Shown here piece by piece: positions 22,201-46,200 of a stretch of DNA of 64,000 bases (the stretch's first letter is position 1; each line of letters begins with the position of its first letter). Below the pieces are notes generated by a model that ran no database searches, was not told the origin of the DNA, and was given only the letters and a program-made list of their open reading frames with translations. The translations under genes and the position numbers were made by a program. Location: NCBI RefSeq assembly GCF_902459465.1, contig NC_047062.1:14074001-14138000 (forward strand). The letters are read 5' to 3'. This DNA comes from Asterias rubens (lineage: Eukaryota).

Positions 22201-25200
22201 ACTTTTGTCAACAACTTTGTACAGGTGCCAGTTGAAAGCCATTCAACCTGTTACTGCTGAACAGCCAGGGATTAGACCAAAGTTTACAATACAAACTTAA
22301 CTTAACTTAACTTAATTAACTTAATAAAAAAATTACTTTAATTGCACAAAAACACTTTATAAAGAACCTTTACATTACGAAAACTTTAAGAAAAGTCAGA
22401 ATCCAAAACTAGTGGCGTACCATTTTCTGCTTGCTTCTTTGGGTTTCTGTAGACAAAGCGGTCCAGGAATTTCATCAGCGTGAAATCATGCAGCGGGTTG
22501 CCCATGTAGTGTACCTTCAAACCATCACGTAGGGTCTTTGCAAAGAGGGCTACCGAAGGGTGATAGTGATTCTGGAGCTGTAATATCAAAAATAAAAACA
22601 ACAATCAACCTAAAAGTCTCAATAAGTGAGGTGTCAAGTGAAGTAAAGCATGAGAAAATTTGTGGGCTATTAAAAGGGTTTGTGTACTTTTTGGGTACAA
22701 TGCAAACATCCACAGATTAACATATTAAACTTACACAGTTTAAAGATAATGATGGTAGAAAGCTTCCCTTAAAATATTACTTGCTGTAGTTTTTTTGAGA
22801 AACAAGTAAAACAATTTCACAAAAATAATGTTTATGTCAGTAAGTCGAGAAATATTCAAGCATGATTAATGGATTGACCCGACTCTCCTGAAAACATTGC
22901 TTTGTGATTTTCACCTTTTTCTAAACAAAACTGAAACTTCTACAGTATTACATACATCTTCATACGCACATCTTCATACGCCCTTTCATATAAAAAAAAC
23001 ATTCAATTGTGCATTTTCTCACTGTCACTTGGGGATGGGGGGGGGGGGGTTCCAAAGAAAGGGAAGGGAATATTGTTTACACCACTGGAAGTGTCTAAAT
23101 TTTCCGCTCCACTTATGATCCATTTCAACATGACATCAATGGATTTGATTAAAACAAACTTTTCTTTACAGACAAAAGTAAGAAAGCTCACTTTGTTGAG
23201 TTCCCAGAAGATGCTCCCCTCTGCACCGCAGTATTGAGGATTCCTGTTGCCTGGATCATATTGGGTCTTTTTCTCTGAAATAACAAATTAATCAATTGAA
23301 GAACGTGAGTATGCAAATTGGTCGCCACAAAGAAGCACTCCAATGATAAAAACATAAATGTGTTAACACAGTTGGGGTTGTGGTGTGTCATGGCTAAGCT
23401 TGGGCGATATCGATTTATTTTATTCACGATATATCGCCGACAATATATTGCGATATTTGATATAATCGCGATTAATTAAATTTGACATCATCAGTCTTCA
23501 AACTCCAAGTGAAAGTTGTAGAAGAGACAGTCATGGCATAAGAGAGATGTTCTAATGACCTATTCTTCTGGTTTTACTCCAAACCTATGGGGTGCAAGAT
23601 GTCTCAGCTAGCATAAACATCACGATATATCGCGATATATTTATATTTCGATTAAACCAAATCCATCCGATATCAAAATCGTTCCAAATTAATATCGCGA
23701 TATTCGATAATATCGTGATATCGCCCAAGCTTAGTCATGGCCTAGCGGTTAAGAGCACCAGACTCTAGCTCTGTGTCCAGCAGAGTTTGGGTTCCAGAGC
23801 AGTGACACCTGTGTCCTTAAGCAAGAAACTTTACCACTCGTCAAAAACTAAGCGGGTACAAATGTATGGACAAATAAATAAGAAACTGAATTATTACAAT
23901 AGGAGTAAAAATTCTCTAAAACATTCAAACCTGTTAGCAATACATGTAACTGTGTTGAGCGCTTGACCGCTCGGCCACGTACCTTTCTTAAAGAGTTTGT
24001 GATGGACCCAGGATGATACAGCCTCAGAGGTTACCTCTCCTTTCTCGCTCCTTATCGGTTCATTGACTTGTCTTGTCTTTTTGCTATCCTCATCAACGTC
24101 AACAAAGTGTTCTTCATTGTCAGAATCCTAAAATAAACCGCAAAAACCGTTTAAAAGGATTGGTAAGCATAAAAAACATAAATGTAGAATTTTAGCCTGA
24201 ACGCTTATTGATAATGAAGTTGTACAACCATATTTTACAAATAAATAATTATGAGATAATTAAGGTAAAAATTAAGGTAAAATTTTTCTCTCAAATAGGT
24301 TGTTTTGACTTCAGTAGAAATAAAACGTGTCAACAACAAACTAAGACGAGACTCACAATTGCTTCCATGGCAGTATTCAACAATGCAGGCTTCGTGGCCA
24401 TGATCTCAGAAACAAGGAACAGTGCCCCGCAGGCAAATGGAGGCTGCTGGGTTGACGATGTCTGCAAAAGTCTCTTCACAAAAGCCTGAAAGCAAAGTAA
24501 ACAAACTAACATAAAACACAAAACTCAGTTTAAATGTTCCATGATGCACACTTATTGGTTAAGAAAGGTCTTTAAAAGCTATACTAGCAATGTCTTATCA
24601 GAGATTTGTCCCACACCTCAAATGTTTCATCAACCCTAGAAAAAAAGCAAATTATGCTCACTTTCTCTGAAGTAAAATAAAATTTCATCCTGACAGTAAC
24701 CACGAGAAAGTGCTGAATTTAAGGGAAGCATCGTGACATGTCTGGTACCTTGACTCTGCCTATTGAGTTATCTGCTCTGAGTGACTGGTAGATGAGATTG
24801 AGGAACATGGCCTGCCTGGTTGAGTGTTCAACACTACGGTCAAGAATTTTGCTGTACAGCGCCGAGTAGAAACGGTCAGTGATGGAATGCCTGCCAAGGG
24901 AAACAAAACATAAGACTTTATTACTCTCCAAAAAGAATGCTCGCACAAGTTTACTACAAATATTTCAAAAATACACAAATTGCAAAAGAAACACCAACAA
25001 GGATTTAAGAATAAAATACATACACACCCATTCTTGCCATGTAGACAACCAGAAAATGCAAGGTTTGTGAACCACCAGTACTCATCTTTTATAAGATAAA
25101 ATAACATGGGAAATAACATGGATACAACTTAACGATTTTATGATCAACAAGTGTCTAAAATTTGTTGCTTTGTTACTTATATTATTACTATTACAGTGAC

Positions 25201-28200
25201 AAGAATTGAAGAATGTTAACAAATTCCTGCCAACAAATCGCAGGGCCTGGACAAAACCTCACATTCATTTACATTTCTAATTACTGAAACCCTGGAAATA
25301 AATAGAACTGAAAAACCGCCCACAACCAAGGTTACTTTACCTAGAGTCCAGAACTTGTTTGAGAAGCAGTAGAGCCTGAATGGCCGTGTTGAAGGCTGAA
25401 ATATGAACCACTTTGAATAACGCGTCTGTCTGCTCGTCAACCCGATCATCCCCAGCTAAAGAAAATGTAGGAAAGAATTTGAACCAAATAAAATGGTGTA
25501 TTTAATAATAACAATAGCTAGTTCTTATAAAGCACAATCACAATAACGTCTCAATACGCTTTACATTAGTGCCCTGGTCATTGGGTCATAACATTCCTTT
25601 AATATTTCTCAGGTCCCTGGGGAGTATACTTCCCTAAACTGGGCCCAATTTCATAGAGCTGCTAAGCACAACAATTTGCTTAGCATGACATTTTTGATAA
25701 AAACAGGATTACCAACCAAATTTCAAAGTGATTTTCAGGATAAGCAAACAACAGCTGAATACCAGCATACAAGCAATATGCAACAAATGGAAATTTGGTC
25801 GGTAATGTTGTTTTTATCAAGGAAGAAATTTGGCCCTGATGTGGCGTTCCAGTTGCTTTTTCATACACAATTTCAACCTCTCCCCTCACTGTACCAAAAA
25901 TCCCGCTCGAGTAAAGTTTTCTTTGTCCAAACCCATATCATTTCAAATTTTACCAAGTCTGTTTCCCTTTTGGTTTACAACTTGAGGTTCAAGACTTGTA
26001 ACTTTTTTTTCTTATTTTTATACAGACTCTGTCTACTGGAAAATGAGTGGATCACAAAACTGAATTTGACCTCGATGACCCTATTTTATGAGTGAAATGC
26101 ATGGAAATCGATTTACCGTTGGAGTAAGGGTAGGCTCTGTTGACTCCCGTTAGTACAGCACTCAACATCTTCTGATCGCTGTCCTTCTTTTTCATGCAAG
26201 CCTGGTCAAAAATTTACACAAAATACAGTTTCAAGGCTTCAAGATTTATTTTGTTTCCACAGTAACAAATCTTATACAGGCAATAGTATGAATGTACATG
26301 TTTCAATGACAAAATACCATGTCGAATATGACATCACCATTCAAAGACCTGCCCTTCAACATGGCATCTGTAAGCGTGTGCTTGTACGTGCATACGGCCT
26401 GCCCTACAAGATGGCCACTTTCATAGCAACAAGGGGGTTATTTGATACGGTCAATACAGTTTAGCCAGGCAGATATAAATACACTTTGGGGATTCTGCAG
26501 GGGAGCTCACAAAGAGTTACAAGCCTGAGCCAACAGGTACTTTCGTTGAGAGCCAAAAACCAAACATTAATGTAACTTTAAATACAGAGGTTGAGTAGTC
26601 AGTTAAAATAGCACAAGGTAGGGCTCAAGGGGCGACAAATTTCAAAATTCAATGTCCCTAAAACACAGATTAGAAGAAAAATAAATTATAATTGCAACCA
26701 AACTTTTACTGTATTTTGAACAACTGCAGTTTGTCCACAAAAAAAACCGGTAAGGACCATCCGGCACTGCAAGGATTTAGACCGTTGTCAAAAAGATGAA
26801 ATCATCTGATTAGCTGACAAGTTGCATACCTGAATGAACCTTTATTGCACATGCTATCGAAATTTTAAGTGTAGTTGCAAAATATATAATTCTATTTCAA
26901 GAATTTAAAAAGTTCTTGCTCTTGTTTTTAACCCAATGTTTTCTACTATGAATACATATAAATCACACAAAGTAATTCATTTGACATGCGCTCATACCCT
27001 TCCTGTGTAGTCTCATGACTTTAAAAAGATCGGGGGGGGGGGGGGGGGGGATAATGAGTCAGTGGTATATTTTCCCAATTTACCTTGAAGAAGGAAAAGT
27101 AGACAATGATCAGCTTGGTGGCTAAGTCCGGCTCGTCGTGGCTTAAGATAAGCTGATTCAGAAAACAAACAGCATAGTATCTAAAACAAATAACCAAAAC
27201 AGAAATAAGCAACTTTGTTTACCAACATGATGCAAAAGTACCAGTTGATCTTGCAAGCTTACATCCCATTTTCATGGCACTGCACGTTTCATTTATCTGC
27301 TTACGGTGATTTGGGCTGAAAGAAATATTATATTATTTCAATAAGAAATAAATAAAAACAATCGCATCCGCCATTGACGATGCACAGGTTGAATAAATGA
27401 ATCGTTGCTACATGTGGCTGATGGACTTAAAAACAACGTCCAGTCCTCACAATTATTAACTAGTTTCCAATTAACTACCGCTTATCATATTTTTAAAATA
27501 ATAGGTTGTTGAATGTATGGCAAGCAGTTCCATTATTGGGCCCTTGCACTGATTTCCATAGAGCTGATTGTTTTCTGATCAGCAAAATTATGCAGGCATG
27601 TTGTGGCAGAGCGGTCAAGCAGTCATCTGTTTGTTTTAATGAAACCTGTAAGTGGCTGCAATCTGCTGTTGGTTATCAATAATAAATAATGTTTAAAAAT
27701 GTATAAAACAGAGCATACCTAATTATTTGCATCTTGTAAAATTGCTTCGCATTAGCTTTCGTGTGAGGTATGAACCAAGGAGGTAGAATTATGAACTGTG
27801 CTGTAAAAAGGTTGTGCGTGCTTAAAAGTGCTTCCCTATTGCCTGTAAAAAATATAACCTCATGTTTGAGAATTTGAGCTCGCTGAGACCATCACTACAA
27901 CCATCAAAACAGCCCAAGGTCTAGTAGTGAGAAGATTATTTCCTCGCTTTTTTTCCTCACTTATTGAGCACACCTCATGCTCTGTCATCATCCTTTTGCC
28001 TTGTAGATAATGCAGGTTTTATCGACAAGTACACCAACACTAAGTTAAAAACTTCAGCTAAAATGGAATGCTCTTGAAATATATTAATAGAAAAGTTCTT
28101 GAAAATAATGTGGCGAGAGTAAAGAGCCGACAGTGGAAAAAAAAAATCCTGAGTCTTTCTCGAAGGCTAAAAGTGTTTTTAAAGAACCAATAACCCAATA

Positions 28201-31200
28201 TTTAAAGAGGTATCAAAGTTAACAGTTTTTTTTAATTCTGTGAATAAAGATGGAAAATAAACAAAGCACAAGGCCAAACGCTACCAGTTGCAGGGATCCT
28301 GCCTGCCCAAGAATACCCCAAAACAACTCCAAATATTCCTCAAAGCCAACGGTCACAAAAACAACATCGTTTCACCAGAAGTTTAAGAAGACAAACCACT
28401 CCACAACAAACATCCACAGCCTAACAAATAATCAACAGTATTTCATCCAAATTACTATAACAATCAACCCCATCCTTCAACCACAACCCTGGCCAATGCG
28501 CCAGGTTTTTGACCATGTGAGGGCGCTCTCATTTGTATTTTTTTAACGTTTCTGGGGGTATACGCGATTCATCCTGCATTGTTTTAATAACAAAACAGTA
28601 TTTATATAGCGCAAAACAAATAAAACATTCCTTAAAGTGCTTAACAGCAAAATGTAAGTATTAAGAAAACAAAACTTAAAAGCTGGTCTCAGGTCAACCT
28701 TTGATTTTCTTGCGCCCGCAACAAACCGTCGGCAATGTGCAGACAAAATATGCTCAGGTCACAACAACTGAAAAATCGTGCGCCTGCAATAGGTTCCCGA
28801 AAGTCGGGGTCTTGTTGTACAAGTTGAAATTGTTCTGCTCTGGTGACTGTCAATTTTTTCGAGCAGCGACTGTTGCAGATTGTCTTAAAATCATCACAGT
28901 TATGCTCAGGTCGTAAATAATACCCGACCGAAAGAGTTCCCGATGGTCTTAGCTCAGGCGCAGTGTGATACTGAAAAGTCAGTGCCAACTTTTTGTTGTT
29001 AACCCAAGGTCGACCTGAGGCCAGCTTAAGAGTATAATTCCAAATTTATTCCCAACAAAATTATATAAATTGTAGCCATTACTAACCTAAATGAAACCAT
29101 AAAAAAATACTAAAAACAAGAGGTGGATTATAATGACTCATTTAATGGTCTTATTGTCCGTTATGGATATGTCCGCTATGGAAACTTGAGCCCCCCCCCC
29201 CCCATTTGACTTTTGTAAGCAATTGAGGCTACTTGCACCAGCAACTTCACGTAAGTTGTTATCAAAATTGACATCACAATTGGAAAACAGAGCATGCCTG
29301 ATTATTTGCGTCAAGCAATTTGCTTTCACATGAACCGGAATATAAACAGTAATTGCGTGCCTTAAAAGAGCTTCCCTGTTGCCTATAAGAAAGCAGACTG
29401 CGTTTAATAACTTGAGAGAATGATCAAAAACTTATTAGCAGCACAAGGTCTGTTTGCTCGCTTTTTGTTCTGAGTTGATTCCAGATCAGGTCACAAAAAG
29501 CAGAAGCATACCTCTTGTTCAGTCACAATCCTTAAGGTTTGCAGATAACACAGGCTTTATCGATACAACACTAAATTCTTCAAAACTTCGACTAAAATGG
29601 AAATTTCTTGAACAATACTAAAGAAAAAGTTCTTTAAAATAATGTGGCAAGTGTATGTCTGTTTAGTTTTGGTGCTGGTCAACACGTCACGTATAGACTC
29701 CTGCAACTGTGCTTCTGGCTGGAAGCAAAATGGTCAATTCTGTTACAAGCTTGTCACCAATCCACAACTAGACAGGTATGCTGCCGACAACTTTTGTATA
29801 TCTTTAAACAGTGTTCTTGCTCAACCCGAGTCTAAGGAAGAAAATGATCACATCCAGAACATGATCCAAGCCCTCCCACAAAGTATTTTCATCAGCCTAT
29901 TGTTGGAACCTAATGTAACTGTACAACACAGCATTGATGTTAGTGACACTTTCACATACTTCAACTTTAAGCCATCATTCCTCAACACAACTCCTCCAAC
30001 CAAACGCTGCACAAGATTCAATGATAAAGGACTGTGGACATTGGGCCGATGTGAATTTCTTCGCAGCTTCATCTGTAAACAAGAGATTGGGAGAAATCCA
30101 AAGTCAGCACGTTGTGTGGCTGTTGCACCCAATGAAGACCTGTGCCTTCTGAAACACACCTACAAGGAGATCAAGTCTGATAACAACCCTGCCATCCAGT
30201 GCTGCTTTGACTGCCACTACGACCCAAATTGCTACTCTTTTAATATGATGGGACAGATGTGTGAGCTCAACAATGCCACTGCATCTCAAGTGCAAGATTT
30301 AGCATACAAAAATGGCTGTGCGTATTTTGAAGTTATAGCATAAATTAAGAACGCTCTTCAGAATGGGGAAACTACAAAAGCAAGAAGTGAGAAATGCTAT
30401 GCACTTATAAACAAAAAATTAGAACACACAAGAGGAGTTGACAGATGAACTGCATAAGGTGGAATGCATATTGTTATCATCAAATTCATGAGAATTACCA
30501 AAGAAAATAGTGAGCAGTTTATGGCAAAACACTTTAACACTATTGAACAAATTAACCGAGAAGAGAGTTCTAAGATAAGTTTTATGGAGAAACGCGAGAG
30601 CTCCCACAATTCAATGTTTAAAGAAGTAACGGAAACTAATTAATGAGGTAAGTGAGCATTTTTAAAGTTGTTTTCTCTTTGTCTTTTTATACTGGATCAA
30701 GTCTATATAAGAAATGTATACCTTTTGGTCTTTGCAACTGTTCATACATACTATAAAACTAATTTTTTGTTTCGAAAAGGTGGTAGTATTTTTGAGATAT
30801 CGCCTAAAATCTGGAGTGGTTATATCCATGCAGGAAGATTAATCCATAATTGAAGTACACAGTCTGAGAAACAATTCATGCATGAAGCTTTCTCAGAATA
30901 AAATTTGTTTCTCTTCTCTAAAACCACATTATACCTTAGAATTCTCTCATCATTTAAATTGTTACCTTATAGTCTATCAAGAATGCCACTGCTTGTGTTT
31001 TGCAAGGATTGTGGGTTGTGTACAGATCCTACAGAACGCAATGTGTTCTGTGTTCGTGGCACTTGTCAAGTTAGTTTTTGTGGTGTGTGTATTACTTGTA
31101 AAGTGAGGGTTTAATGCTTCACATGTAGAGGGCTTCACTAAAAAAAAACAAGCCTAGCAGAATCGCCTTGCCTATTAAAAAAAAAAAGAAATCCCCAAAT

Positions 31201-34200
31201 CACATATTGACCTGTTGATTTTTTACCCCCTTAGATTGTCCCATAAAGAGTCAGATTAACGGCTGTATTGATTGCACGTAGTGAAGTTTTGCAGTGTTTT
31301 TGTGATAGCTACAAACATTCATATAGGCAGGTCCACACTAACTAGCCACTGATTAAGTCACAAGTCCTTCGTCACGTTGTTTGTTCGACCTGTCGTTTTC
31401 AGGTTGTGGACTTGGTGTGTTTCAAGGAAAATTTATTTTTCACACTGTTTAAGCCCTGAGGTAAGGGACTCATAATAACTTTATCTATTTCTTGGGGACT
31501 CGATCTATTAGAAATATGTAAAAACTGTATATTTTAGAGCATCCGAGATGGGTTCTTTAAGCATTTTAAATTTTGCTATGCAAACTCTAAGGACCGCTAA
31601 CACACAAACCAAAACAATTTGTGAAGCAGTTTTGCTATTCTGGGATGAAATCAATGCGCAACAAAAGTGTTTACCTTTTGCCTATAAATATTACGACGTG
31701 TCTAATAACTTGAGATCGATGCAAACGCTTCTTCATATAACAATCAAATACACCACTAGCAGTCTGAGGTTTATTTCCTTGCTTTTTGTTAAATTTACTT
31801 CAAGAGCATTACACCAAGAGCAGAGGCACAAGCCATGCTCTGTCATTATCCTTTTGCCTTGAAGATAATGCAGGTTTTATCAACAAGTACGCCAACACTC
31901 ACTCTCACACCCTCCTCAATTTACCCAATACCCACCACTCCAAACCCAATCTTCAGATAAGTTTGCCTGTTTACAACAATAAAGTACCAGCATTAAGAAT
32001 TTCAGTTTAACCATCAAGGCAAAAAAGTTTGAAATCTTGAAAGCACATGGAGCCCCCCCCCCCCCCCCCCCCCCCGTGACTTTTGAAAGCAATTGAGACT
32101 ACTTGCACCAGCAACTTCACCAAAGTTGTAATCAAAATTGACATCACAATTGGAAATCAGAGGGTACTTGATTATTTGCGTCGCAATTTGCTTTCACGTG
32201 AACCGGGATATTAACAGTAATTGTGTGCCACAAAAGAGCTTCCCTGTTGCCTATAAGAAATCAGACTGCGTTTAATAACTTGAGATCGATGCAAACTCCC
32301 CTTCACTATAATGATCAAAACCTTATTAGCAGCCCAAGGTCTGTTTCCTCGCTTTTTGTTCCGAGTTGATTCCAGAGTAGGTCACAAAGAGCAGAAGCAT
32401 ACCTCCTGTTCAGTCATTATCCTTTAGGCTAGCTGATACCGTAGTTTTTATTGACGCAACACTAAATTCTTCAAAACTTTGACTAAAATGGAAATTTCTT
32501 GAACAATACTAAAGAAAAAGTTCTTTAAAATAATGTGGCAAGTGTATGTCTGTTTAGTTTTGGTGTTGGTCAACACGTCAAGTATAGACTCCTGCAACTG
32601 TGCTCCTGGCTGGAAGCAAAATGGTCAATTCTGTTACAAGCTTGTCACCAATCCACAACTAGACAGGTATGCTGCCGACAAATTTTGTATATCTTTAAAC
32701 AGTGTTCTTGCTCAACCTGAGTCTAAGGAAGAAAATGATCACATCCAGAACATGATCCAAGCCCTCCCACAAAGTATTTTCATCGGCCTATTGTTGGAAC
32801 CTAATGTAACTGTACAACACACCATTGATGTCAGTGACACTTTCACATACTTCAACTTTAAGCCATCAGTCCTCACAGCTACTCCTCTAATCAATCGCTG
32901 CACAAGATTCAATGATAAAGGACTGTGGACATTGGGCCGATGTGAAGTTCCTCGCAGCTTCATCTGTAAACAAGAGATCAGGAGAAATCCAAAGCCAGTA
33001 CGCTGTGTGGCTATTGCACCAAATGGAACAGCTGTGCCTTCTGAAACACACCTACATGTACAAGGAGATCAAATTTGAGAGCCAACCTGCCATCCAGTGC
33101 TGCTTTGACTGCCACTACGACTCGAAATGCTACTCGTTTAACATGATTGGATCACAGATGAGTGAGCTCAACAATGCCACTGCATCTCAAGTGCAAGATT
33201 AAGCACACATAAAAAGGTAAGGTGCTGTACTTATAACATAAAAAAGAATGCTCATCGTATGGGGGCAACAACAAAAATAAACAAAACACCAGCAACAAGT
33301 GAAAAAAAATTCTGCACTTATTACTAACATTATGCCTATAACATCCCAAATAAGTTGACAGTTGACTGCAAAAGGTAAAACGCCAGAAGAAAGTATCAAA
33401 TTCATGACATTGACCTAAGAAAATGGTTTACTGGCGAAACACTTGAACTTGATTCAACGAAATAACTGAGAAGAAAGAGATTAAGTTTTAAAGAGAATAG
33501 AGAGAGCTCGTATGATTCAAAGTTAAAGAAGTAACCAAAACAATTAATGAGGTAAGCAATTAACATTTTGTTAATTGTATCCTTTGTCATTTGTTTAATT
33601 TTCAATCATGTAGTTAAAGACACTGGAAACTATTGGTAATTGTCAAAGAGCAGTCTTCTCACTTGGTGTATCTCATCATATGCATAAAATAACAAACCTG
33701 TGAAAATTTAAACTCAATTGGTCGCCGAAGTTGCGAGGTAATAATGAAAGAAAAAACACCCTTGTCACACAAAGTTGTGGGCTTTCAGATGCTTGATTTC
33801 GGGACCTCAAAATGTAATTCTGAGGTCTCAAAATCAAATTCATGGAAAATTATTTCTTTCTTGAAAACTACAGCACTTCAGAGGGAGCCGTTTCTCACAA
33901 TATTTTATACAATCCACAGCTCTCCATTACTCATTACCAAGTAAGGTTTTATGCTAATAATTACTTTGAGCAATAACCAATAGTGTCCTTTGCCGCCAAA
34001 TATATTTTTGGTTTTCAAACCATTCATTTAATCCTGTGTTCATGTAAATGTGTTTATGTAAATATGTTTTTCTTTATATATGTTTAATGATTCATTTGAA
34101 ACATAGTTATATCATGCACAAGGCAAGAGGGTAAAGCCTAAAATAAAAACAGGAAGAAATCCTGCAAGACCCAAATAAAGGACAAGTACTAGAGTGGCAA

Positions 34201-37200
34201 GATGGGTGAGGGGAGATTGCTGACAAATCTTGAGCAGCTATGTCCACTCAAGAAGAACTTATCCTTATTTGGAAACAAACAATCTGAGAAACAATTCATG
34301 CATAAAACTTTTCTCAGTTTGGACATTTTAAAAATTCCTTTCTCTAAAACCACCTTTCTCTGAAGGGAGTTGCTTCTCAAAATGTGATACATAATCACTA
34401 GCTGCAGTGCTTCTTACCAAGTTAGTTTATATTGTCATTTATTTAAAGGCATTGTCTGACTAATGGATTTCTAATCTGTATAATGAACTTCACTGCATGT
34501 AAATACTTAAATCTCAATTACATTTTAGCCACATTCAACAGCGCAAGCGCCAAAATCAGGATGGACAAAAACATTAAATAAATGAAAATTGCACATGAAA
34601 TTATTTGAACAGACAAAACCTGACAAAGATATAAATGGCGAACAGTTCTAACATCAAAGAAGCTAAAACATAAGTTGCACTATGGACCCGACCTCCCCTT
34701 TCAGATAAAAACAGAAGAGAAACAAAGGGATAATTACAAAGGAGAGGGAAAAATCACAAGATTTCATTGATTTTTTTGTTTGAAGGCAGGAAGGGTGAGG
34801 TGGAAAATGTTAATAATAGGATTCAAATGGGTAATTCAGTTGTAATAAGAGGACACTTTATTGCTTGGAACGTAGAAGTTGTTGAACTTGTTGAAATTCT
34901 GAAGTTGAGTAGAAATTGTTGAACTTGTTCTGAAGTTGAAAGCAGCTAGAATAGTAGTTTTACACTTAGTTGTACATGGGAGTATATATAGCAGACTCGA
35001 GCACAATTTCATGACAAATGCTGTCTTCATTTGTTTCCAATCAAAGACAAAAAGTCTTGAGTAGCAATTTATTTCAAATCAAAGAAAAACCTCCTGCGTA
35101 CCAATTTGTTTCCCATCAAAGGAAAAATGTCTTGCCTGCTAATTTGTTTCCAATCAAAGGAAAAAATATCTTTGATAACAATTTACTTCCAATCAATAGT
35201 AACTTATGAGATATTCCCTCAAGGTGTTATGGGCGACTGTTTGAACACCAAACAAATTGCTGTGTGGCAACTAACTTGAGATATCAACTTCTGTAGTAGA
35301 GTTTTAATATTTAAAAACACGTCCCAACCCTACTACTTCAGGCCTAATACTTCACAAAGGCAACAAAGATGATTGCCTCCATGCCCCCCCCCCCCCCATT
35401 GCCTTGAGGCCCTTGAAATGCTCCAGTAGAAATTTACAATTTCCTCACACCAAGGAGAAAATGCCTTGTTGCCCTTGCCCTTTTAAAAACAAAGCATAGA
35501 GGCCTGCATACTTCATTAACTAATAGACGGGCTGTGTGGTGAATGCCCAGGACTACCCCAGCTGCAAACATGCAACATGTCAACTGTATAAACAGATCCC
35601 AAATTCCGACTGCCCTGTCTACTCTTTCAGAGGTTTCTAAGTTGTGGATGGGCATAGCTCCAAAAAGTCATTGGCCAACTTTCAAGAAGAAGAAAATAAA
35701 GAAAGAGAAAAACCCTGGCAATAACAAGTGGTTTTCTTCGCTTGCCTGCACACCTAAAAAACCCAATATCGAAAAACAGTGTTAACAATTTAAGATTGCG
35801 AACTCTCATGTCATTTCTTTCCAATTATATCCCACTATTGCAATTTCTTTCATATCGATGCTGCTCTACGAGTTTCCCTCTAACCAATCAACACCAAGAC
35901 TTTTATCAGAGTAGTTTGAAATTAGGCGAATAAGGGACTCCTCAAACACTTTTTAACCACGCTGAAAAGCTTTTATCGACCAGAAAAAGAGAGCCTAACG
36001 AGCCTGTTTTAAAGTTGTACTTGGGATGCTGCTGACAAATGAGAATACTCACAAGAACAATTTTTTTTCTTTTTTGGGAGAGGGGGGGGGGGGGGGTATA
36101 GGTCATTAAATGGGAGACATGTAAACACAACCAGATATTTCATTGTGTATCATGCACAGTGCATGCACTTGCTGTGCTCCAATAGGAGACTTTCCAACGC
36201 TAGGTGGCAGCAGACATACCGGGTAAATTTCCATTGTTTACGTAGTTCTGAACATGCGCATAATTCTGAGAACAATGGATTTACCCGGTAAGTCTGCTGC
36301 CCTCTATCGTCCCAGAAAGTCTCCCATTGCCAAACACTAAAAGGGAGCAAGGATACTGTAACTCATGCTCCAAGTCTCCCCGGGCCCTTTTAAAGGGATG
36401 TTTGTGTAATCCACAGTTTAAAACTACATCCTCTTGTTGCCGACAGGCTACTGCCACTTTTAACCATTTAAATCGATTAATTATTAGCCATGGTTTTGGT
36501 CTAGGGTTCAGCAAATTCACAAACCAGATTAGTAGGGTTACTCCTACTCAGATTTTCTTGAAAGAGAAAAAAAAGAACTCCTGGTGCATTTTATGCAAAC
36601 ATTTGTTGTTTGTATTTGGCTCACTAATGGTGTCACTGTGATAAAATCTTTTAAAGGAAACAATTATAAGTATACCCCAAAAATATCAAACGGGTGATTA
36701 TTTTTAAAAAACCTTAGCCTTAGTAATCAGGCTTTTTGCATAGTGGCAAATACCGTTGCCTTATTGCAAAGAAGATTGTAATGTTGGTTGGTAACTGTTG
36801 AGGCGTTGAAAATGGCACGAGGGCACTGTTCGTCAAAGGTTCAGGTGCGCGTAACATGACGCGCCAACGAGATCCCAATTTTTTTTTTTTACTTTTGTTA
36901 TAAGCCCAACTGGAGGTTTAAAAAAATGTTTTACTTTTTCTGGGATGACCTTGGCGCACGTTTTTGTGTTTACGGGGAATGTACTATTCGTTTCTTGAGG
37001 GCTTTTTGGCCCAAACTTTGATAACTGGTAACTCCAAAACCGAAAGCGTCAGCAAACTAAATTTTTGGATTTATTCGTTTGGTATGATGGTGTATCACTC
37101 TAATTTTTTGGAAGAAGATCTGCGAACCCATGAATCACACCCCCCCCCCCCCTAATTTGGTACATTCTTACAGGCAGGGACTCTTAAGTATATATTAGTT

Positions 37201-40200
37201 GTGTTTATTTGACTCTGGTTTATTTTGAACTGTGAACTAGGGTTCATTATGAGAAATTGTTTGACAATCAGCTTACATCCACATATTCCACCTTGCTCAA
37301 ATTATGAGCACACTTGCATTTAACTAAAATAGGTACAAAGTGTTACCATTTGTCAGTGAATGATAATGTCTTTACTTGTCGATGTTAATGTGAAAATTGT
37401 GATGAGTGTACTACTGCACTGTAATCTGGTCAAGAATTTGTTTTAATTTGTTTTAAGGAATGTTTTAAAGGAAGCGATGTCTAAAGATCAAGGCAAATTA
37501 TAACAATTTCAGGCCAGTTGCAGTAGTTTGTTGTTAAACGCTATTGATGTTAATATAATGTAGAATATTTTAAGTATACTGCACATTTATTTCATTTCGC
37601 AATGGGCTTGATTGTAAGTTGACGTTCAACTTTCACTATATCAATTTCATTTAGGTTTTGCTACTTTTGCATTTCCCAAAATTTGCTTTTTGTAATTCAT
37701 TTACCTTTTTATAAGTACCTTTAGCCTTTCCTAATTCGTTCAGCTTTTCCCAATTTTTTTCTAATTCATTTAGCTTTGAAAATTTACTTGGCTTTTTCTA
37801 AATTTGCCTTTCCTAATTTTGCATTTTCTCATTTAACTTTTCCTCACTTCATTTAGCCTTCCCTAATTTATTTAAATTTTCCTAATTTTGCTTTCCATTA
37901 ATTATGCTTTCCCTTCATTTACCTGTCCTAATTCAAAGGCTAAAGAACAGTTCTTTTCTCTACATATTAGCTTTTTTCCCCAAGACATTCAGTTGAAACA
38001 AGTAGGAATGGGTTGGTACAAATACCTGCATTTCTTTCTGAGGACCATTTGAACCAGCTTGCCAGATTTTGAGGGAAAAAGAACAAGGTAATTTTTCATG
38101 ATAACATGAACGTCAGTTGGGCAAAATTCTAAGTTGTTTACAAATGACAAGAAATGGAGGTCAAGTCTTATTATCAAGATGTCGATTACATAAAAGAAAA
38201 TTTTACCTTTAAGGGAATTTGGGTGCTTTACCATATATCAGATTCATGTGTGTAAGCAAAAAATGCATATCCCATGAAGAAATGTCTGCTAGTGCATGTA
38301 CACGTTCAGTATGGATTTGCGTTGTTGCATAATGTATGTGCTAAATAAAACCATTGGTTAGGTGATGTGCCTTTTGCATTCTTTTTGGTTAAGTAGTGTT
38401 TTATGAAGAAAAAACTGTCCTTTATAAGAGCTACTCCACAAGCAGAAAGCATCTGCTTACAGGCTTTATGAATAGTGTCATACTTTTTATAGGCCAATCT
38501 TGGTGCAACTTTGAATATTTTGAATATCATCTCTTCTTGCTGGCCCACGGTATTTGTTTTAATCATTCCCTTGAAATTTTACTGTAATGTATTGATGTTA
38601 TCATATTTTATATTATGGAGTTATAAAAGACACAGGAAACTGACCGAGCGAATTTACACAAATAATTTGGGGTGGAACAAAGGAAACTTGAGTAGAGCAG
38701 GATTTGAACTAATGACACCGATTTAACATGACGGCAGTCAATGTTAGCGATCTCCCTACTTTTTCAATACCTTTTTTCAGGGATGCAAGTCAGAAGCCAT
38801 ACATCTACATTTGTTCAACTCCAAATTATTTTGTATATAGTCAGTAATTTCTTTGACTACATGTCGTGACATACAATTTTCTATTGTTATATTTAAAGCC
38901 ATTAGACACTTTCGGAACAGAAAAAAAAGTTCACAGATTTACAAATAACTTAGAGGGTTTACAGAAGGTAATGATGAAAGACTTCTCTTGAAATATTATT
39001 CCATGAAATGCTTTACTTTTTGAGAAAACATTAAAACAATATAAATTCTCGATATCGAGAATTACAGACTTATTTACACACATGTCATGACATGGCGAAA
39101 CGTGCGGAAACAAGGATGGGTTTCCCCCGACTCCGATGACCAATTGAGCCTAATATTTCACAGGTTTGTTATTTTATATATAAGTTGTGATACACGAAGT
39201 GTGGGCCTTGGACAATACTGTTTACCGAAAGTGTCCAATAGCTTTAATGATTGTTTGTAACTACTTGGCACATTAAAAAATTTCCCAAGGATAAACAACA
39301 ATTAAATAAATAAATAAATAGCATTCTGCACGAGTGCTAAAAGTATAAGCTACATATTGTGACATCATACAAGTACTCCTAAACAACGTGTACATACACC
39401 CAAGTCCAAGCCATCGTGAGTGTTCACTCGCATGTACTGTACTAACACATTTCAAAATTACACAACGAGAATGGGATTGCACTGTCTGTGTGTTGAATTG
39501 GTAAATAGATTGAGTTTTGTATTCTATTGTATAGTTGATATGTTGTTCTGGAATGTTTTTGAAATTATATTTTCATTTTTTTTAACTGCGCAATGAGTGT
39601 CAAAACTTGCTAGAAACCGGTACTTAATAACTGTTCATATTATTGTTATCATTATAAATTGTATATTTTAAATGGAATATCAACTCGAATATTACTAAGC
39701 TTTCTACGAACGGGAAATAATTCAAAAAATTATAAACCATAATTGATGACAACCAATAATCAAGGAAGACCATAATTTAAAGTCAGTCCCAACGCCAATT
39801 TTGTTGCGATATAGGAATTAAGAGATGCTAAGCAGAATAGGGTTAACCAGCTGAAATGCTACGAAATGAATCATTAACTGTTTTTGACCGGTTCCCTGTT
39901 TTTGACCGGTTCCCTGTTTTGAGCCATAATCTCACAGGCAATGCACACAGTTGTATTTTTTATGTAGATCTATATTATTTATTTATGTCAACTTAAATTA
40001 CTCCGATCAGCCCCCAGCACTGCTTTCCATGCAAGGCCTCAGAAAAAAAAAATGTATTAGTAAAAAACATGTTAACACCATCAATACTGTTATAAAGGAA
40101 AGACACCATGGTCTTCTGCGATATAGCAAATCTTTACACAGAATTGTAGATTAAAGCCATTAAAACACTTTCGGAACAGAAAACAAACAAAAAGTTCACA

Positions 40201-43200
40201 GATTTACAAATAACTTATAGGGTTTACAGAAGGTAATGGTGAAAGACTTCCCTTGAAATATTATTCCATGAATTGCTTTACTTTTTGAGAAAACATTAAA
40301 ACAATAGCAATTCTCGGTATAGAGAATTACGGATTTATTTTAAAACACATGTCATGAGACGGCAAAACGTGCGGAAACGAGGGTGGGTTTTCCCCTTATT
40401 TTCTCCCGACTCCGATGACCGATTTAGCCTAAATTTTCACAGGTTTGTTATTTTATATATAAGTTGTGCTACACGAAGTGTGGGCCTATTGACAATACTG
40501 TTTACCGAAAGTGTCCAATGGCTTTAAAAGACACAAGATCAAACAAATTGTGACTTACTGTGCTTTTGGGCTGACGTTAGCACGATACAATAAGGACTCC
40601 ACTTCAGTGACGACTACTCCTTTCATGTTGGTATGAATCTCCACTGTTAAAAAGATTGTGCATAAAATTGTCGAGATTGAAAATGTGAATATTCACAGAT
40701 TTGCATAAATTTATATCCATGGCATAAAGATCTTCATGGGAAAAAACTTTCCTTGAATTTTTTTTGCATGAAATGCTTTAACTTTTCAGAAATTAGTAAA
40801 AGAATTAGTTTTTATCTTAGGAATCCAATACCCAATGTTTGAAAACTGATTTTTTTTTTCCCCACCATTTTCTTGTGACCGATTGAGCTTAAATTTGCAC
40901 AGGTTTAGCTCCAAGCCCTTTCGTCTGATTTGCACTGTGCACCCCATAGCAAAGCTGGTGACAAAACCTTCACAGTCACTGCAGCTGGGGAGTTGAACCA
41001 TCTACCCTTTTTCATCCAAACATGTAAATGTTGGGTCACATTAATTGTGGATACTGGTCTTTGACTATACCCAATCTTACACATGTGGTTTACTGGGTGT
41101 AGGAACATACTTGTGCACTGTAACGGGCCCTGAATACGAACAGGTTCGAATATGCACAATACTTGCACGGTCTATTCAGTTCATATTACTCTCAAGTCCC
41201 CTTCACCCAACCCCAAGAAAATAGAAAAGAATCTTTCTCTACTCAAAGTATACTGACCTAAACTTTGCAAGAGGTGGACGGCTCTTGCTGCCACCTTATA
41301 ATCTGGATCACCAATCTTGTTCACAACCAACGTCAGAAGGATCTGTGTCAGAGAAAGGATCAATTTAAGAAAGCAGTTTGTTTACAAAATTAAGCACCTC
41401 TAAAGGTATGTAAGGTAAAGTGTTCCCCCAACTTTTATTTTAGATCGAAAAATATCTTAACAAACTAATGACAGGAACATGTTTTTGATAAAGTGCTANN
41501 NNNNNNNNNNNNNNNNNNNNNNNNNNNNNNNNNNNNNNNNNNNNNNNNNNNNNNNNNNNNNNNNNNNNNNNNNNNNNNNNNNNNNNNNNNNNNNNNNNNN
41601 NNNNNNNNNNNNNNNNNNNNNNNNNNNNNNNNNNNNNNNNNNNNNNNNNNGTGACAGTGTGCCTTTAATACATGGATGGCTTTCGAGTTTTGTATTTTAT
41701 TTTTAATGGTTCCTTAACTTAGGAAGTCAGAATGATTACAAAATAAATCTTTCTCGATGTAAACATTTCATTAGGAATAAAGAATATCATTTTAATTTCA
41801 CCCCAAACCTATACTCAGTGATCCAACCCCCTCCCCCCCCCCCACTGAAAAAATATAGTTCTGCGGAAGAAAACATGTCCAATATAACCAATCAGCTGTT
41901 TGCTAGCTAGATTTGAATGTCTGGTACATACAATGACTTAGTGACAAGTTACCACTAACATTTTCATTCCTCAGACTCTGAAGACACGTGCTATGTCACT
42001 TGATTCAGTGTAAGCTTTTTCGTAAGAGACAGTAATAATACGTGCACAACTTTGAATGATTGAATATGCAACAACTGCACCAGGGTTAACTTTTCTGCCC
42101 CTAAACCATAGCAACTGACTCTTGTAGTCTGAAGAATTCAAACTTAAGCAGCAATTCAGTGTATGTACCAATGTCAGTTATTAAAATCAAATTCATAAAT
42201 ACCTCGGACAGTTTCCCTATTCCTATTGGTGGAGAGCGCGTCACGTGGGTGTGTATAAACCTTTGTTTATGACAGGTAAAAAGTGTTAATTCATGGGCAT
42301 GACATGCGACCTTGCACCTGTACTTAGAAGACAGTTTCTTCATTCCTATTGGTCGAGAGCAACAGCTGAAACAGTTGTGCCACATCACGCAATACGCGCG
42401 ACGCGCACAGCATTCCCTTATACGGAGTTGTTTACCCGAGGGCGGCGGAGGGCTTTACCATTTCATAGCTGGAGGGGTGTTGTGTTGAAAGAAATCATTT
42501 AACAATTATAATTTTTGCATTTATTTTACTTTTTGACCAAAAAGTGATGATGTTTTTGACCGAAAAAGTATCAAGAACCAGGCCTCGTTGGGATTAAACC
42601 ACTAGTTGAAAACCTCTTCACCACACATTGATTCCCTTATTCACAAATGGCTAATTGATTAAGTGTACCTTCTCTTGTTCAGGTTTGTGTATCAGTAGCT
42701 CATGGGCAGTGCTCATTGCTTTCTGTTTTACAGCAGGGATGGTGTCATGGGACAGCCGCTGAAAAAGGCAACAAAGAAAGGCATTAGAGATATATTTTTG
42801 ACACAAAATTAGATATAGAACCCTTGCACAAGACGCAGTGACCTACACGCACCTAACCTGTCGGCTGTTTTGGTAGTTAAAATGTACAAAAGGTGCTTTC
42901 TGTGTTGTGCAAGGGCTCAATGGGGAAAAATTATTAACCACTTGATCTCCACAAGTGTGCAGTTCTTTTAAATATGGACTATATTTGCAGAAATATGGTG
43001 AATAAATTGTCTGATCTTGGAATAAAAATATGCATTTTAGCTATAGGGATTCAAGTATTTAGGGGATAAAAGTGTGTATATGTAGTTTCCTTTTCAAATA
43101 TAGAGTCATCTCTACCACGTTTGTCATAAATAAAGTTTGCACATTGTGAAAGAACAAATACTGATATGAGTGTTTTTATTTATGCCTTTGCCTCTACACA

Positions 43201-46200
43201 TTGCCTTTTAGTTTTGTTTGTTGGTAGGGATAAGAGTAGGGTGAAAAGGGCTTTTAAAATGTATTCCAATAATTTGCTATCTTACCTCCAGTGTTACTAC
43301 AAATTCCTGGAATTTTTGTTTGAGTTGATCTTCGTAATACCACAGGACAAGCCTTCTGTTCAGGTCATCTCGTCTGCCTTTGCTCAGATGGTTCAACAGC
43401 ATGAATGGATGCTACAAACAGATTGAACAATACAAGAAAATTCAAGGAGTTTAGTGTTGCAAAGGGTAAACTGATAATCGAGACAAACACCACAAAAATA
43501 GACAAAAGACTCAAGAAATTCTTTACCTCTGAGAATTTTCTGAGTTTGCGTTTCTCGGGGAGCATCTCCTGGAGGTAGAGCTGTCTTAGCGCATCCATGG
43601 CGACCAGCGTTTCTCTCCTTCCTTTCTTCTTGACCATCGTCATGAGGGAGTCGAATGCCGAGGGCGTGTGAAGAGGTGCAGTCTGGACCTGTAGTGTCAG
43701 GGCAGCGATCTTATCGGCGAGGACACCGGTGCTGACAACGGTTCGCATCCACTGTGCTTTTGAGCTGACGTCACCCTGCTTTCCTGTATCAGGAACAATT
43801 AGTTTTATTTATTTTTAAAGACATGATGTCATACAAGAAATCATATGTATTGAACATGTGGCACTTCAAAACGATTTAATTGGGGTTACTGAAATATTAC
43901 AAATTTAAATTTAAAATAGTACACTTTTTTTTCCAACGAAACTCGGTAATAAGACTCGCTCAAATTGAATTGGGAAACTGAATGATTGGGCTATACATAA
44001 TAAGGACTTTAGTAGTTCAGTGTATGCATTTCAGGCACACTGATTAACAATCAGTAAAAGGTTGGCAGAAACATCAAATTTATGAGTAGGATTTGAAACT
44101 TTGCATGGTGGAGAATGCAACTTATTAAGGTTTGTGGTAACACCATGTACATGAGTAGGATTTGAAATTGTTCACAGTTGAGAATACAATACAAGTAAGG
44201 CTTAGAGTAACACCATGAACATGAAGCTATCTTAGGAGTTTTGGTCGCTCTAAAAAGAACCTGTTGGATAACACCCCCGTTTTTTTCAGAGCCACCACAA
44301 TTCATTAGCGAAATTCATGTACAAGGTGCAAACCTTATTACTCGATAAAGACTTATACCAATAATACGTAATGTTTCCACAGCCACATTAACACTGTAGT
44401 TAACCATGCATCTTTCTCTTATAAAAAGTCAGTACCAGTTCAAAGTAAAAACCAACCTGAAAGGTAGATTTGAATTTCATTTGAATAAAGCCTGCCGGCC
44501 AATCCCTTGTAAGCAGCAACGGTGATGTCATCAGAAAGTTCAAACTTTGTTGGATCTGACTGGAACTGGTAGAAGAAAAAAAAACAATGACAATAGTTTT
44601 TTAATGAAAACATGCATCAATGCCTTACAGCATAATATTGATCACATAAAAGATGGTTTCTCCAAACCATTTGATGACAGATGATGTCTTTTTGATTCAC
44701 ACTCGAATAATGGTAGACATTTATGACCCCTCCAACTCATGTTATAAATCTACCATCTTCTGGTAGTTACTGTGTAAAATGCCTGATTCCTGACCTTCCT
44801 CATTTTTCAGACAAAGAAGGATTTTGAGAGATCAATAGACCTTTATCATGCTGCCTCCATCTTGGTCATGTTCCTCGTATCGAATAACAATAATGAATGC
44901 TAATAATCAGCTTGCAAATAGGAACCAGACTATTTTGTTCTTCCAGCCTTGGTTTGGTAACATTGATATCAATGGGAGAAAGCCAAGATGGCTGCACCAT
45001 GATAAAAGTCTATTTGCTGCCATCATTGTTTATCATTACGAAAGGCAAGTTCTGTATTCCACCATAAATCTATTAAATCTTTGCAGTGCCCACTTCTAAT
45101 ATTTCGAACTACCTCTAGCCATGAGGCTAGCTCGGTGATCTACTGGTAAGACATCTGCTCTAGCAATGTAAAGGTCGTGGGTTTGAATCCCATCCGAGCG
45201 ATTAACATGTGGTTTTGTTTAAAGAACTTGGGAAAGCACCGAGTATACAGTGCTTTATACACCGGTGAAGGTGCAAGGGTAAACAACCAAATTATATTCC
45301 AGCATACCATGGTCCATCAGCCATGGCTTACAGCCAATTGGTTTGGCCAATTCAAGATATATTCCAGCATACCATGGTCTATCAGCCATGGCTTACAGCC
45401 AATTGGTTTGGCCAATTCAAGATATATTCCAGCATACCATGGTCTATCAGCCATGGCTTACAGCCAATTGGTTTGGCCAATTCAAGATATATTCCAGCAT
45501 ACCATGGTCTATCAGCCATGGCTTACAGCCAATTGGTTTGGCCAATTCAAGATATATTCCAGCATACCATGGTCTATCAGCCATGGCTTACAGCCAATTG
45601 GTTTGGCCAATTCAAGATATATTCCAGCATACCATGGTCTATCAGTCATGGCTTACAGCCAATTGGTTTGGCCAATTCAAGATATAAGACTTTCCACTGA
45701 AAAGTCTTCCAGTGACCTCAGTGAGGACACTGTTTGAACTTGTGGCCATCAAATCGAATGAGTCTATTCCAGTAGAAAGTGTTGTACCGCAATAAAGGCC
45801 ATGGACACTATTGGTAATTACTCAAAGTCGTTGTTAGCATAAAAACTCAGTTGGTAACGAGTAATGGAGAGCTAAACAATAATGTGTAACCTTAATAATG
45901 TGACAAATGGCTCCATCTGAAGTAGCGTTTAATCATTTTTGAGAGGTAGTTTCTCACTCAAATACTAAAAGACTTCAGGCCTCAAGCCTTTTATTGGGAT
46001 CTGGAAGCACATAAATTTGTGCAACAATGATGCCCTTTCTTTCATTATTCTCTTGCAACTTCGATGACCAATTGAGTCCAAATTTTCACAGATTTGTTAT
46101 TTTATGCATATGCTGAGATACACCAATTGAGAATACCTGTCTTTGACAATTACCAAAGGTGTCCAGTGCCTTTAAATATCAAGCAAAATCATGCAGAAGA

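Follow-up and report, generated by a model that had tools for sequence, protein, structure and literature searches.

A small cluster of CTLD-PAN lectin genes, one intact and one broken, nested in a long intron of the CEBPZ orthologue in Asterias rubens

The minus strand of a 64,000-nt stretch of the Asterias rubens genome (contig NC_047062.1, positions 14,074,001 to 14,138,000, assembly GCF_902459465.1; referred to as the window, in whose own coordinates all positions are given) encodes an orthologue of MAK21/Noc1/CEBPZ, a 60S-assembly factor. Intron 9 of this gene harbors, on the opposite strand, two units of a lectin family in which a C-type lectin-like domain (CTLD) is combined with a PAN/Apple module; the first is an intact open reading frame (ORF), and the second is broken. 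With a probability of roughly 0.8, we regard the locus as an enlarged CEBPZ intron containing a small satellite cluster of a large lectin family, with one intact and one broken copy.

Results

Two lectin copies on the opposite strand of a long intron

Searches with tblastn and a whole-genome DNA search identified exactly two plus-strand lectin units in the intron, both single-exon and spaced 2.87–2.90 kb. Copy 1 (29642–30343, plus strand) is an intact ORF of 233 amino acids (aa) with a hydrophobic N-terminus, a CTLD (aa 46–147), and a PAN/Apple domain (approximately aa 157–231). Copy 2 is represented by a truncated ORF of 181 aa (32533–33078, plus strand), in which signal peptide and CTLD are intact and 95% identical to copy 1 at the DNA level over this part. 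Ahead of the PAN domain, the frame is lost through a 1-nt insertion at 33029, and a stop follows at 33076–33078. The out-of-frame remnant of the PAN domain was located at 33026–33202 (plus strand) by a tblastn match to aa 165–222 in another frame and by alignment; this frame has a premature TAA of its own at 33200–33202, ahead of the last conserved Cys, which is thus missing. Both ORFs lie wholly within the minus-strand intron and are thus nested on the opposite strand. The initial annotation had described antisense-nested, single-exon genes with signal peptide, CTLD, and PAN domain about 2.9 kb apart, which is confirmed by the ORFs, the Lectin_C matches, and the predicted PAN fold. Its term "tandem array" refers to only two copies, the second one being broken by the insertion at 33029 and premature stops.

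The copies reside in two duplicated blocks on the plus strand (29191–30687, spanning copy 1 together with its promoter region and a portion of the 3′ flank, and 32061–33592, carrying copy 2) with 83.5% identity over 1,557 nt; in the DNA search, block 1 had no further occurrence elsewhere in the genome. The 450 bp upstream of the ATG are 90% identical between the copies. They include a putative TATAAG box at 29384–29389 (plus strand), 258 nt 5′ of the copy 1 ATG and kept in copy 2 at 32252; the GCCTATAAGAAA box, starting at 29384 and 32252, is conserved, and the TATA-like boxes proposed earlier at these positions are therefore present in both units. The first AATAAA 3′ of the copy 1 stop is found at 30897–30902 on the plus strand, with no A-tract after it. 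Each of the duplication blocks has a poly-C tract at its 5′ edge (29191–29203 and 32044–32084). In a metagenome contig (L026, see below), the tract preceding copy 2 is 10 C shorter, and contigs tend to break there.

The host gene and the limits of intron 9

The coding exons of the host gene were delineated as approximately 23 open-frame blocks on the minus strand between about 16302 and 50121, using phmmer and the Pfam CBF profile in addition. Phmmer searches against the PDB matched host exon translations to residues 268–344 (E = 2.9e-12) and 747–803 (E = 7.5e-5) of yeast MAK21, and the Pfam CBF profile scored above its curated cut-off (22.1 bits) in the exons at 24378–24599 and 24764–24880 (36.6 and 31.7 bits). 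Because of these matches, the host gene is assigned, by sequence similarity, to the MAK21/Noc1/CEBPZ orthologues, in line with the initial annotation. Its C-terminal part, as read from the open-frame blocks, is acidic.

Intron 9 extends from 40558 to 27181 on the minus strand and comprises 13,378 bp. The exon upstream of the donor terminates with ...AAAGCACA, GTAAGT begins at 40558, TTTTAG ends at 27181, and the downstream exon opens with ATACTATGC; joined across the intron, the flanking exons read ...RANVSPKAQ / YYAVCFLNQ.... The length and limits given earlier for this intron were thus exact. The remaining host introns are all smaller than about 2.7 kb, the largest, which separates blocks 1 and 2, measuring approximately 2.5 kb; these values are approximate, as they derive from the spacing of open-frame blocks rather than from a spliced alignment, and they agree with the earlier claim that every other CEBPZ intron is below 2.7 kb.

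Domain assignment of the lectin proteins

The Pfam profile Lectin_C (PF00059, cut-off 22.6 bits) matched copy 1 at aa 46–147 with 38 bits (E = 3e-9) and copy 2 with 39.6 bits, so both copies lie above the threshold, and the earlier CTLD call is upheld. An AlphaFold2 (AF2) model of copy 1 was confident over aa 21–88 and 121–150, and the top Foldseek matches of the CTLD model were LOX-1, DC-SIGNR, MGL, and ASGR1 (E ~1e-7). The family alignment shows no variation at six cysteines (C23, C34, C52, C123, C137, and C145).

The C-terminal domain alone remained below threshold with Pfam PAN_1 (PF00024; PF14295 was also tested), reaching E = 1.9 and 8.8 bits versus a cut-off of 21.4. PAN_1 or PAN_4 matched 11–12 of 13 paralogues at E ≤ 1, and the paralogue L022 passes PAN_1 with 25.9 bits. 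An earlier AF2 run with the full protein and 13 sequences had given a predicted local distance difference test score (pLDDT) of approximately 40 for the C-terminal domain. The C-terminal 81 residues were aligned with 57 paralogues and relatives, and the resulting 58-sequence alignment yielded a model of aa 153–233 with a pLDDT of 91.6 and a predicted template modeling score (pTM) of 0.82. The best structural matches of this model in the PDB and Swiss-Prot were almost all PAN/apple modules (probability ~1.0, template modeling scores [TM] of 0.6–0.7): the plasminogen PAN domain, the N domains of HGF and MSP, and the apple domains of factor XI and prekallikrein, further Sarcocystis SML-2, an Eimeria PAN module, leech antiplatelet protein, and the PAN domains of plant S-receptors. 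Compared with plasminogen, HGF, factor XI/prekallikrein, SML-2, and Eimeria MIC5, the copy 1 domain is predicted to have the same fold, a helix on a curved β-sheet with conserved disulfides, at a TM by query of 0.6–0.7 and a sequence identity of 13–20%. Within the domain, Cys16, 35, 39, 45, 55, and 74 are conserved across the 58 sequences. The assignment as CTLD plus PAN/Apple stands at the level of the predicted fold; for the PAN/Apple part, the earlier call is backed by the fold model and by the profile matches of paralogues, not by a direct Pfam match.

In Ca2+-dependent lectins, the WND motif, preceding the third canonical Cys, is the canonical motif for Ca2+ and sugar binding, and EPN or QPD would be expected in the long loop. 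The CTLD of copy 1 has W-T-L-G-R before Cys137, where WND would be expected, and an E-P-N at aa 88–90, which immediately follows the WIGL-equivalent strand and lies where the model has low confidence. Copy 1 also lacks Trp45, Trp83, and Cys86 with its partner Cys, which are nearly invariant in the family. Because W-T-L replaces WND, classical Ca2+-dependent sugar binding by this CTLD appears doubtful.

A large sea-star family and the origin of the two copies

When copy 1 was compared with the 417.6-Mb genome, at least 126 six-frame matches were obtained, most of them full-length, in one frame, and stop-free. The family clusters in tandem on contigs C6, C7, C19, and C22, whereas copies 1 and 2 form an isolated pair in a host intron. 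Relatives are annotated as snaclec- or nattectin-like in Asterias rubens, A. amurensis, and Patiria miniata (RefSeq "snaclec 3-like" or "galactose-specific lectin nattectin-like"; XP_033628955.1, XP_071792473.1, and XP_038047129.1, respectively), and one A. rubens protein (P0152) is encoded in the genome with 100% identity. A profile search of the whole library was dominated by multi-CTLD proteins and left six usable single-unit relatives. Copy 1 shares with the family the signal peptide, the long-form CTLD, a PAN module of about 75 aa, a total length of about 230–250 aa, the single coding exon, and the invariant Cys pattern. It differs by its low identity of 32–38% to the nearest paralogues (38% to the closest one) and by the loss of Trp45, Trp83, and Cys86 with its partner. 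The earlier supposition that the domain pair itself is probably not new was correct, CTLD-PAN proteins being already annotated in sea stars.

The initial annotation had considered the intronless genes as possibly retroposed and had suggested a tBLASTn search for intron-containing parental paralogues. The at least 126 matches proved to be mostly single uninterrupted frames; the intronless state is thus a trait of the family and therefore uninformative on retroposition. A retroposed origin is not indicated, as in addition 450 bp of upstream DNA are shared at 90% identity and the AATAAA at 30897 lacks a subsequent A-tract (no search was made for target-site duplications). The upstream DNA common to both copies points to a local duplication at the DNA level.

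Relics, mosaic alleles, and a duplication junction

Two plus-strand fragments in the intron resemble the 5′ parts of the lectin units. The first, at 27967–28121, corresponds to promoter, 5′ untranslated region, and start region (73–74% identity to 29505–29655 and 32396–32546); the second, at 31655–31899, corresponds to the upstream region (74% identity to 32224–32451) and has a 74-nt core that matches 27968–28041 at 91% identity. By their sequence, both are taken as the remains of additional lectin units.

Sequences from other individuals indicate that copies 1 and 2 differ in their combination and number. The ENA contig L029 (ERZ1764467), from an environmental metagenome assembly, encodes an intact 233-aa protein (P0156, from another individual) that is copy-2-like up to 30060, copy-1-like from 30088, and 94.6% identical to copy 1 overall. 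The frameshifted ORF of copy 2 is present on ENA metagenome contigs (P0154, P0155, and P0001); P0155 has a copy-1-like N-terminus, and its remainder is copy-2-like including the frameshift. P0001 (202 aa) is a spurious protein and not a different allele, since it is copy 2 translated with TGA as Trp by the gene caller. A word-based homologue search with copy 1 turned up nothing but copy 2, located on a metagenome contig. In assembled contigs from the Logan collection, those of run X3 at copy 2 carry copy 1 letters at four of five variant sites, and in those of run X2 at copy 1 the variant letters are those of copy 2. A second ENA contig, L026 (ERZ23498661), likewise from an environmental metagenome assembly, runs from 35347 to 35789 of the window and then directly from 31975 to 33653 at 99% identity. 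From this junction of 35789 to 31975, a 3.8-kb unit (31975–35789, plus strand) is apparently tandemly duplicated in another individual.

Taken together, the mosaics and the junction support the view that gene conversion or unequal crossing-over is still going on at the locus and that its copy number varies. The local birth-and-death that had been postulated before is supported because an intact copy 1, a frameshifted copy 2, two 5′ relics, mosaic alleles, and the duplication junction coexist, with short-read chimeras as a caveat for the contig-derived part of this evidence (see below).

No lectin transcripts in the RNA-like runs, and the state of copy 1

Of the sequencing runs searched, X1–X4 consist of Logan contigs, which are strandless, and the kind of X1, X2, and X4 is not recorded; X5 and X6 are RNA-like and from the same species. 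The host exon is contained in RNA-like and metatranscriptome runs, and parts of the intron are contained in X1, X2, and X4.

Several observations weigh against the reading of the locus as a cluster with a functional member. The lectin was found in no run recorded as RNA, and a transcript of neither copy was detected: X5 and X6 contain 0.98 and 0.94 of the words of CEBPZ exon 3 and 0.00 of the lectin words, which are absent from all of X5–X7. The exact copy 1 protein is missing from a collection of 15 billion proteins, which is weak evidence, as five paralogue ORFs are missing too. The ratio of nonsynonymous to synonymous substitution rates (dN/dS) between copies 1 and 2 reaches 0.69 in the CTLD and 0.94 in the PAN part, as would fit a relaxed constraint on one copy or both, and values of approximately 0.7–0.9 between the copies cannot demonstrate constraint on copy 1. 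Finally, the mosaic alleles derive from short-read metagenome and Logan contigs, in which chimeras between paralogues of 92–95% identity are possible; the longest identical run between copies 1 and 2 is 85 nt.

If both copies were dead, copy 1 would be an open but silent ORF drifting to a pseudogene, and the locus would be the debris of a lectin cluster. The dN/dS values, the loss of the nearly invariant Trp45, Trp83, and Cys86, and the missing RNA and protein records would all fit to this scenario. On the other hand, the frame of 233 codons is intact, the canonical cysteines of the CTLD are complete, as are the cysteines of the PAN domain, the latter domain is modeled with confidence, another individual has the intact 233-aa mosaic allele P0156, and the raised dN/dS could stem wholly from the copy 2 lineage. 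We consider the death of both copies unlikely, with a share of the probability that is still appreciable, and retain a cluster with one intact and one broken copy as the preferred interpretation.

A contig end at 30072 and a possible antisense exon

The stretch 29229–30072 (strand not assigned) was found as one contig in X1 and X2. The contigs of both runs start at 29229 or 29350 and end abruptly and exactly at 30072, beyond which they have 28 letters without a match in the window; nothing covered 30073–30365. A strong minus-strand 3′ splice site is located at 30073–30074 (tttctcccaatctcttgtttacag/ATGAAGC). If CEBPZ exon 9, whose 3′ end reads ...CCCAAAAGCACA, was spliced to 30072, the transcript would continue with Gln and then TGA, and minus-strand ATTAAA and AATAAA signals are available at 29146 and 29050. 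The breakpoint at 30072 also falls in the interval in which L029 switches between copy 2 and copy 1 (30061–30100).

The contig end could be due to antisense exonization, to an insertion allele, or to an assembly effect. In the case of exonization, CEBPZ transcripts would be spliced from exon 9 to the acceptor at 30072 and terminate within the intron, which would yield a truncated or decay-targeted isoform. This would account for the exact common end of the X1 and X2 contigs, as 28 unmatched letters are approximately the k−1 expected for a unitig entering a shared exon, and it is in agreement with the strong acceptor, the immediate stop, and the poly(A) signals. In addition, X2 looks like RNA in containing 100% of the CEBPZ exon-3 words in only about 140 Mb of contigs, and exonization into host transcripts has precedents among nested genes and L1 elements (PMC3192792). 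However, X1 and X2 are strandless runs of unrecorded kind, and the 28 letters are unread. The contig end at 29229 coincides with the end of the DNA contig L029, suggesting a graph or repeat effect, and an allele with a transposon inserted at 30072 would give an identical picture. Exonization is therefore rated as improbable. It is even less probable that the antisense acceptor and poly(A) signals of copy 1 divert a fraction of the CEBPZ transcripts into a form that stops after one codon, by which the dosage of a ribosome-assembly factor would be tied to a polymorphic, fast-evolving lectin insert.

Other repeats of intron 9 and its surroundings

A short interspersed element (SINE)-like repeat of about 340 bp is located 3′ of copy 2 (33614–33950, strand not assigned), as judged from the genome search and from contig depth. 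A first look at the genome gave 7,531 candidates, 40 scored copies were about 90% identical, and its contig depth was extreme in all four runs. The stretch 28697–29090 is moderately repeated. Near the 5′ end of the intron, direct repeats at 38893–39247 and 40151–40527 are 87.5% identical and 1.26 kb apart; an inverted relative of them is present at 33660–33765, and related inverted fragments adjoin the SINE-like element. Pfam searches with the other intronic ORFs (28692–29045, 35543–35782, 36327–36638, and 38309–38566) gave no match.

Outside intron 9, about five head-to-tail units of 65 nt were observed on the minus strand at 45258–45652 in an upstream CEBPZ intron; an identical 46-aa open frame (AMADRPWYAGIYLELAKPIGCKPW...) cycles through all three frames of these units. 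The intron between CEBPZ exons 7 and 8 contains 152 N at approximately 41500–41650, representing a gap or a masked stretch. Elsewhere in the genome, a second CBF-domain gene (G000 C5:19386613-19388715) presumably encodes a relative of NOC4L or NOC3L.

Discussion

The locus described here is an ordinary case of opposite-strand nesting, the commonest gene overlap in animals (PMC5174743, PMC13309782, PMC12274878). Typically, such nesting comes about when a short, young duplicate inserts into a long intron (PMC5174743), and the nested genes of Drosophila, mammals, and C. elegans are likewise short young duplicates residing wholly in a long intron of the opposite strand. Unlike these, the nested unit of the starfish was duplicated and decayed in place. 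The literature searched contained no description of the locus, nor of a CTLD-PAN gene nested in CEBPZ.

We propose that intron 9 grew to 13.4 kb through the lectin satellite cluster and interspersed repeats, that copies 1 and 2 would have originated from a tandem duplication at the DNA level that included upstream DNA, and that they may still exchange sequence, as suggested by the mosaic alleles and the copy-number junction in other individuals. The product of copy 1, if expressed, would be exported via its signal peptide and would bind extracellular ligands via two disulfide-rich modules. A role in immune recognition or adhesion is conceivable from the domain families only.

A different view of the nesting was put forward in the initial annotation, according to which induction of the nested lectin hinders CEBPZ elongation and thereby couples a secreted defense or adhesion output to ribosome biogenesis. 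The convergent, overlapping layout would allow for this, and transcriptional interference between nested and host genes has been documented in other systems (PMC3192792, PMC5174743, PMC13309782). The RNA-like runs argue against it, as plus-strand RNA was not found and X5 and X6 contain the CEBPZ exon and lack the lectin; of the two copies, only the first is intact, and in mammalian nested pairs interference occurs but does not drive a divergence in expression (PMC8467205). A coupling of lectin induction to CEBPZ output is thus unsupported, and we regard it as the least probable of the accounts considered. In the interpretation preferred here, the nesting is a by-product of duplicates having landed in an intron and not a regulatory device.

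The satellite cluster as such opens no new question, since nested opposite-strand genes are common, sea-star annotations already include the domain pair, and a connection of the lectin with ribosome biogenesis is unsupported. It would gain in interest only if reciprocal expression of lectin and host, or host transcripts spliced into the antisense strand of the lectin, turned out to be true. For the sea-star CTLD-PAN family, the locus adds one divergent member, and it illustrates, in a neat and datable case, how secreted lectins of a fast-expanding family may seed housekeeping introns and then duplicate, recombine, and decay there.

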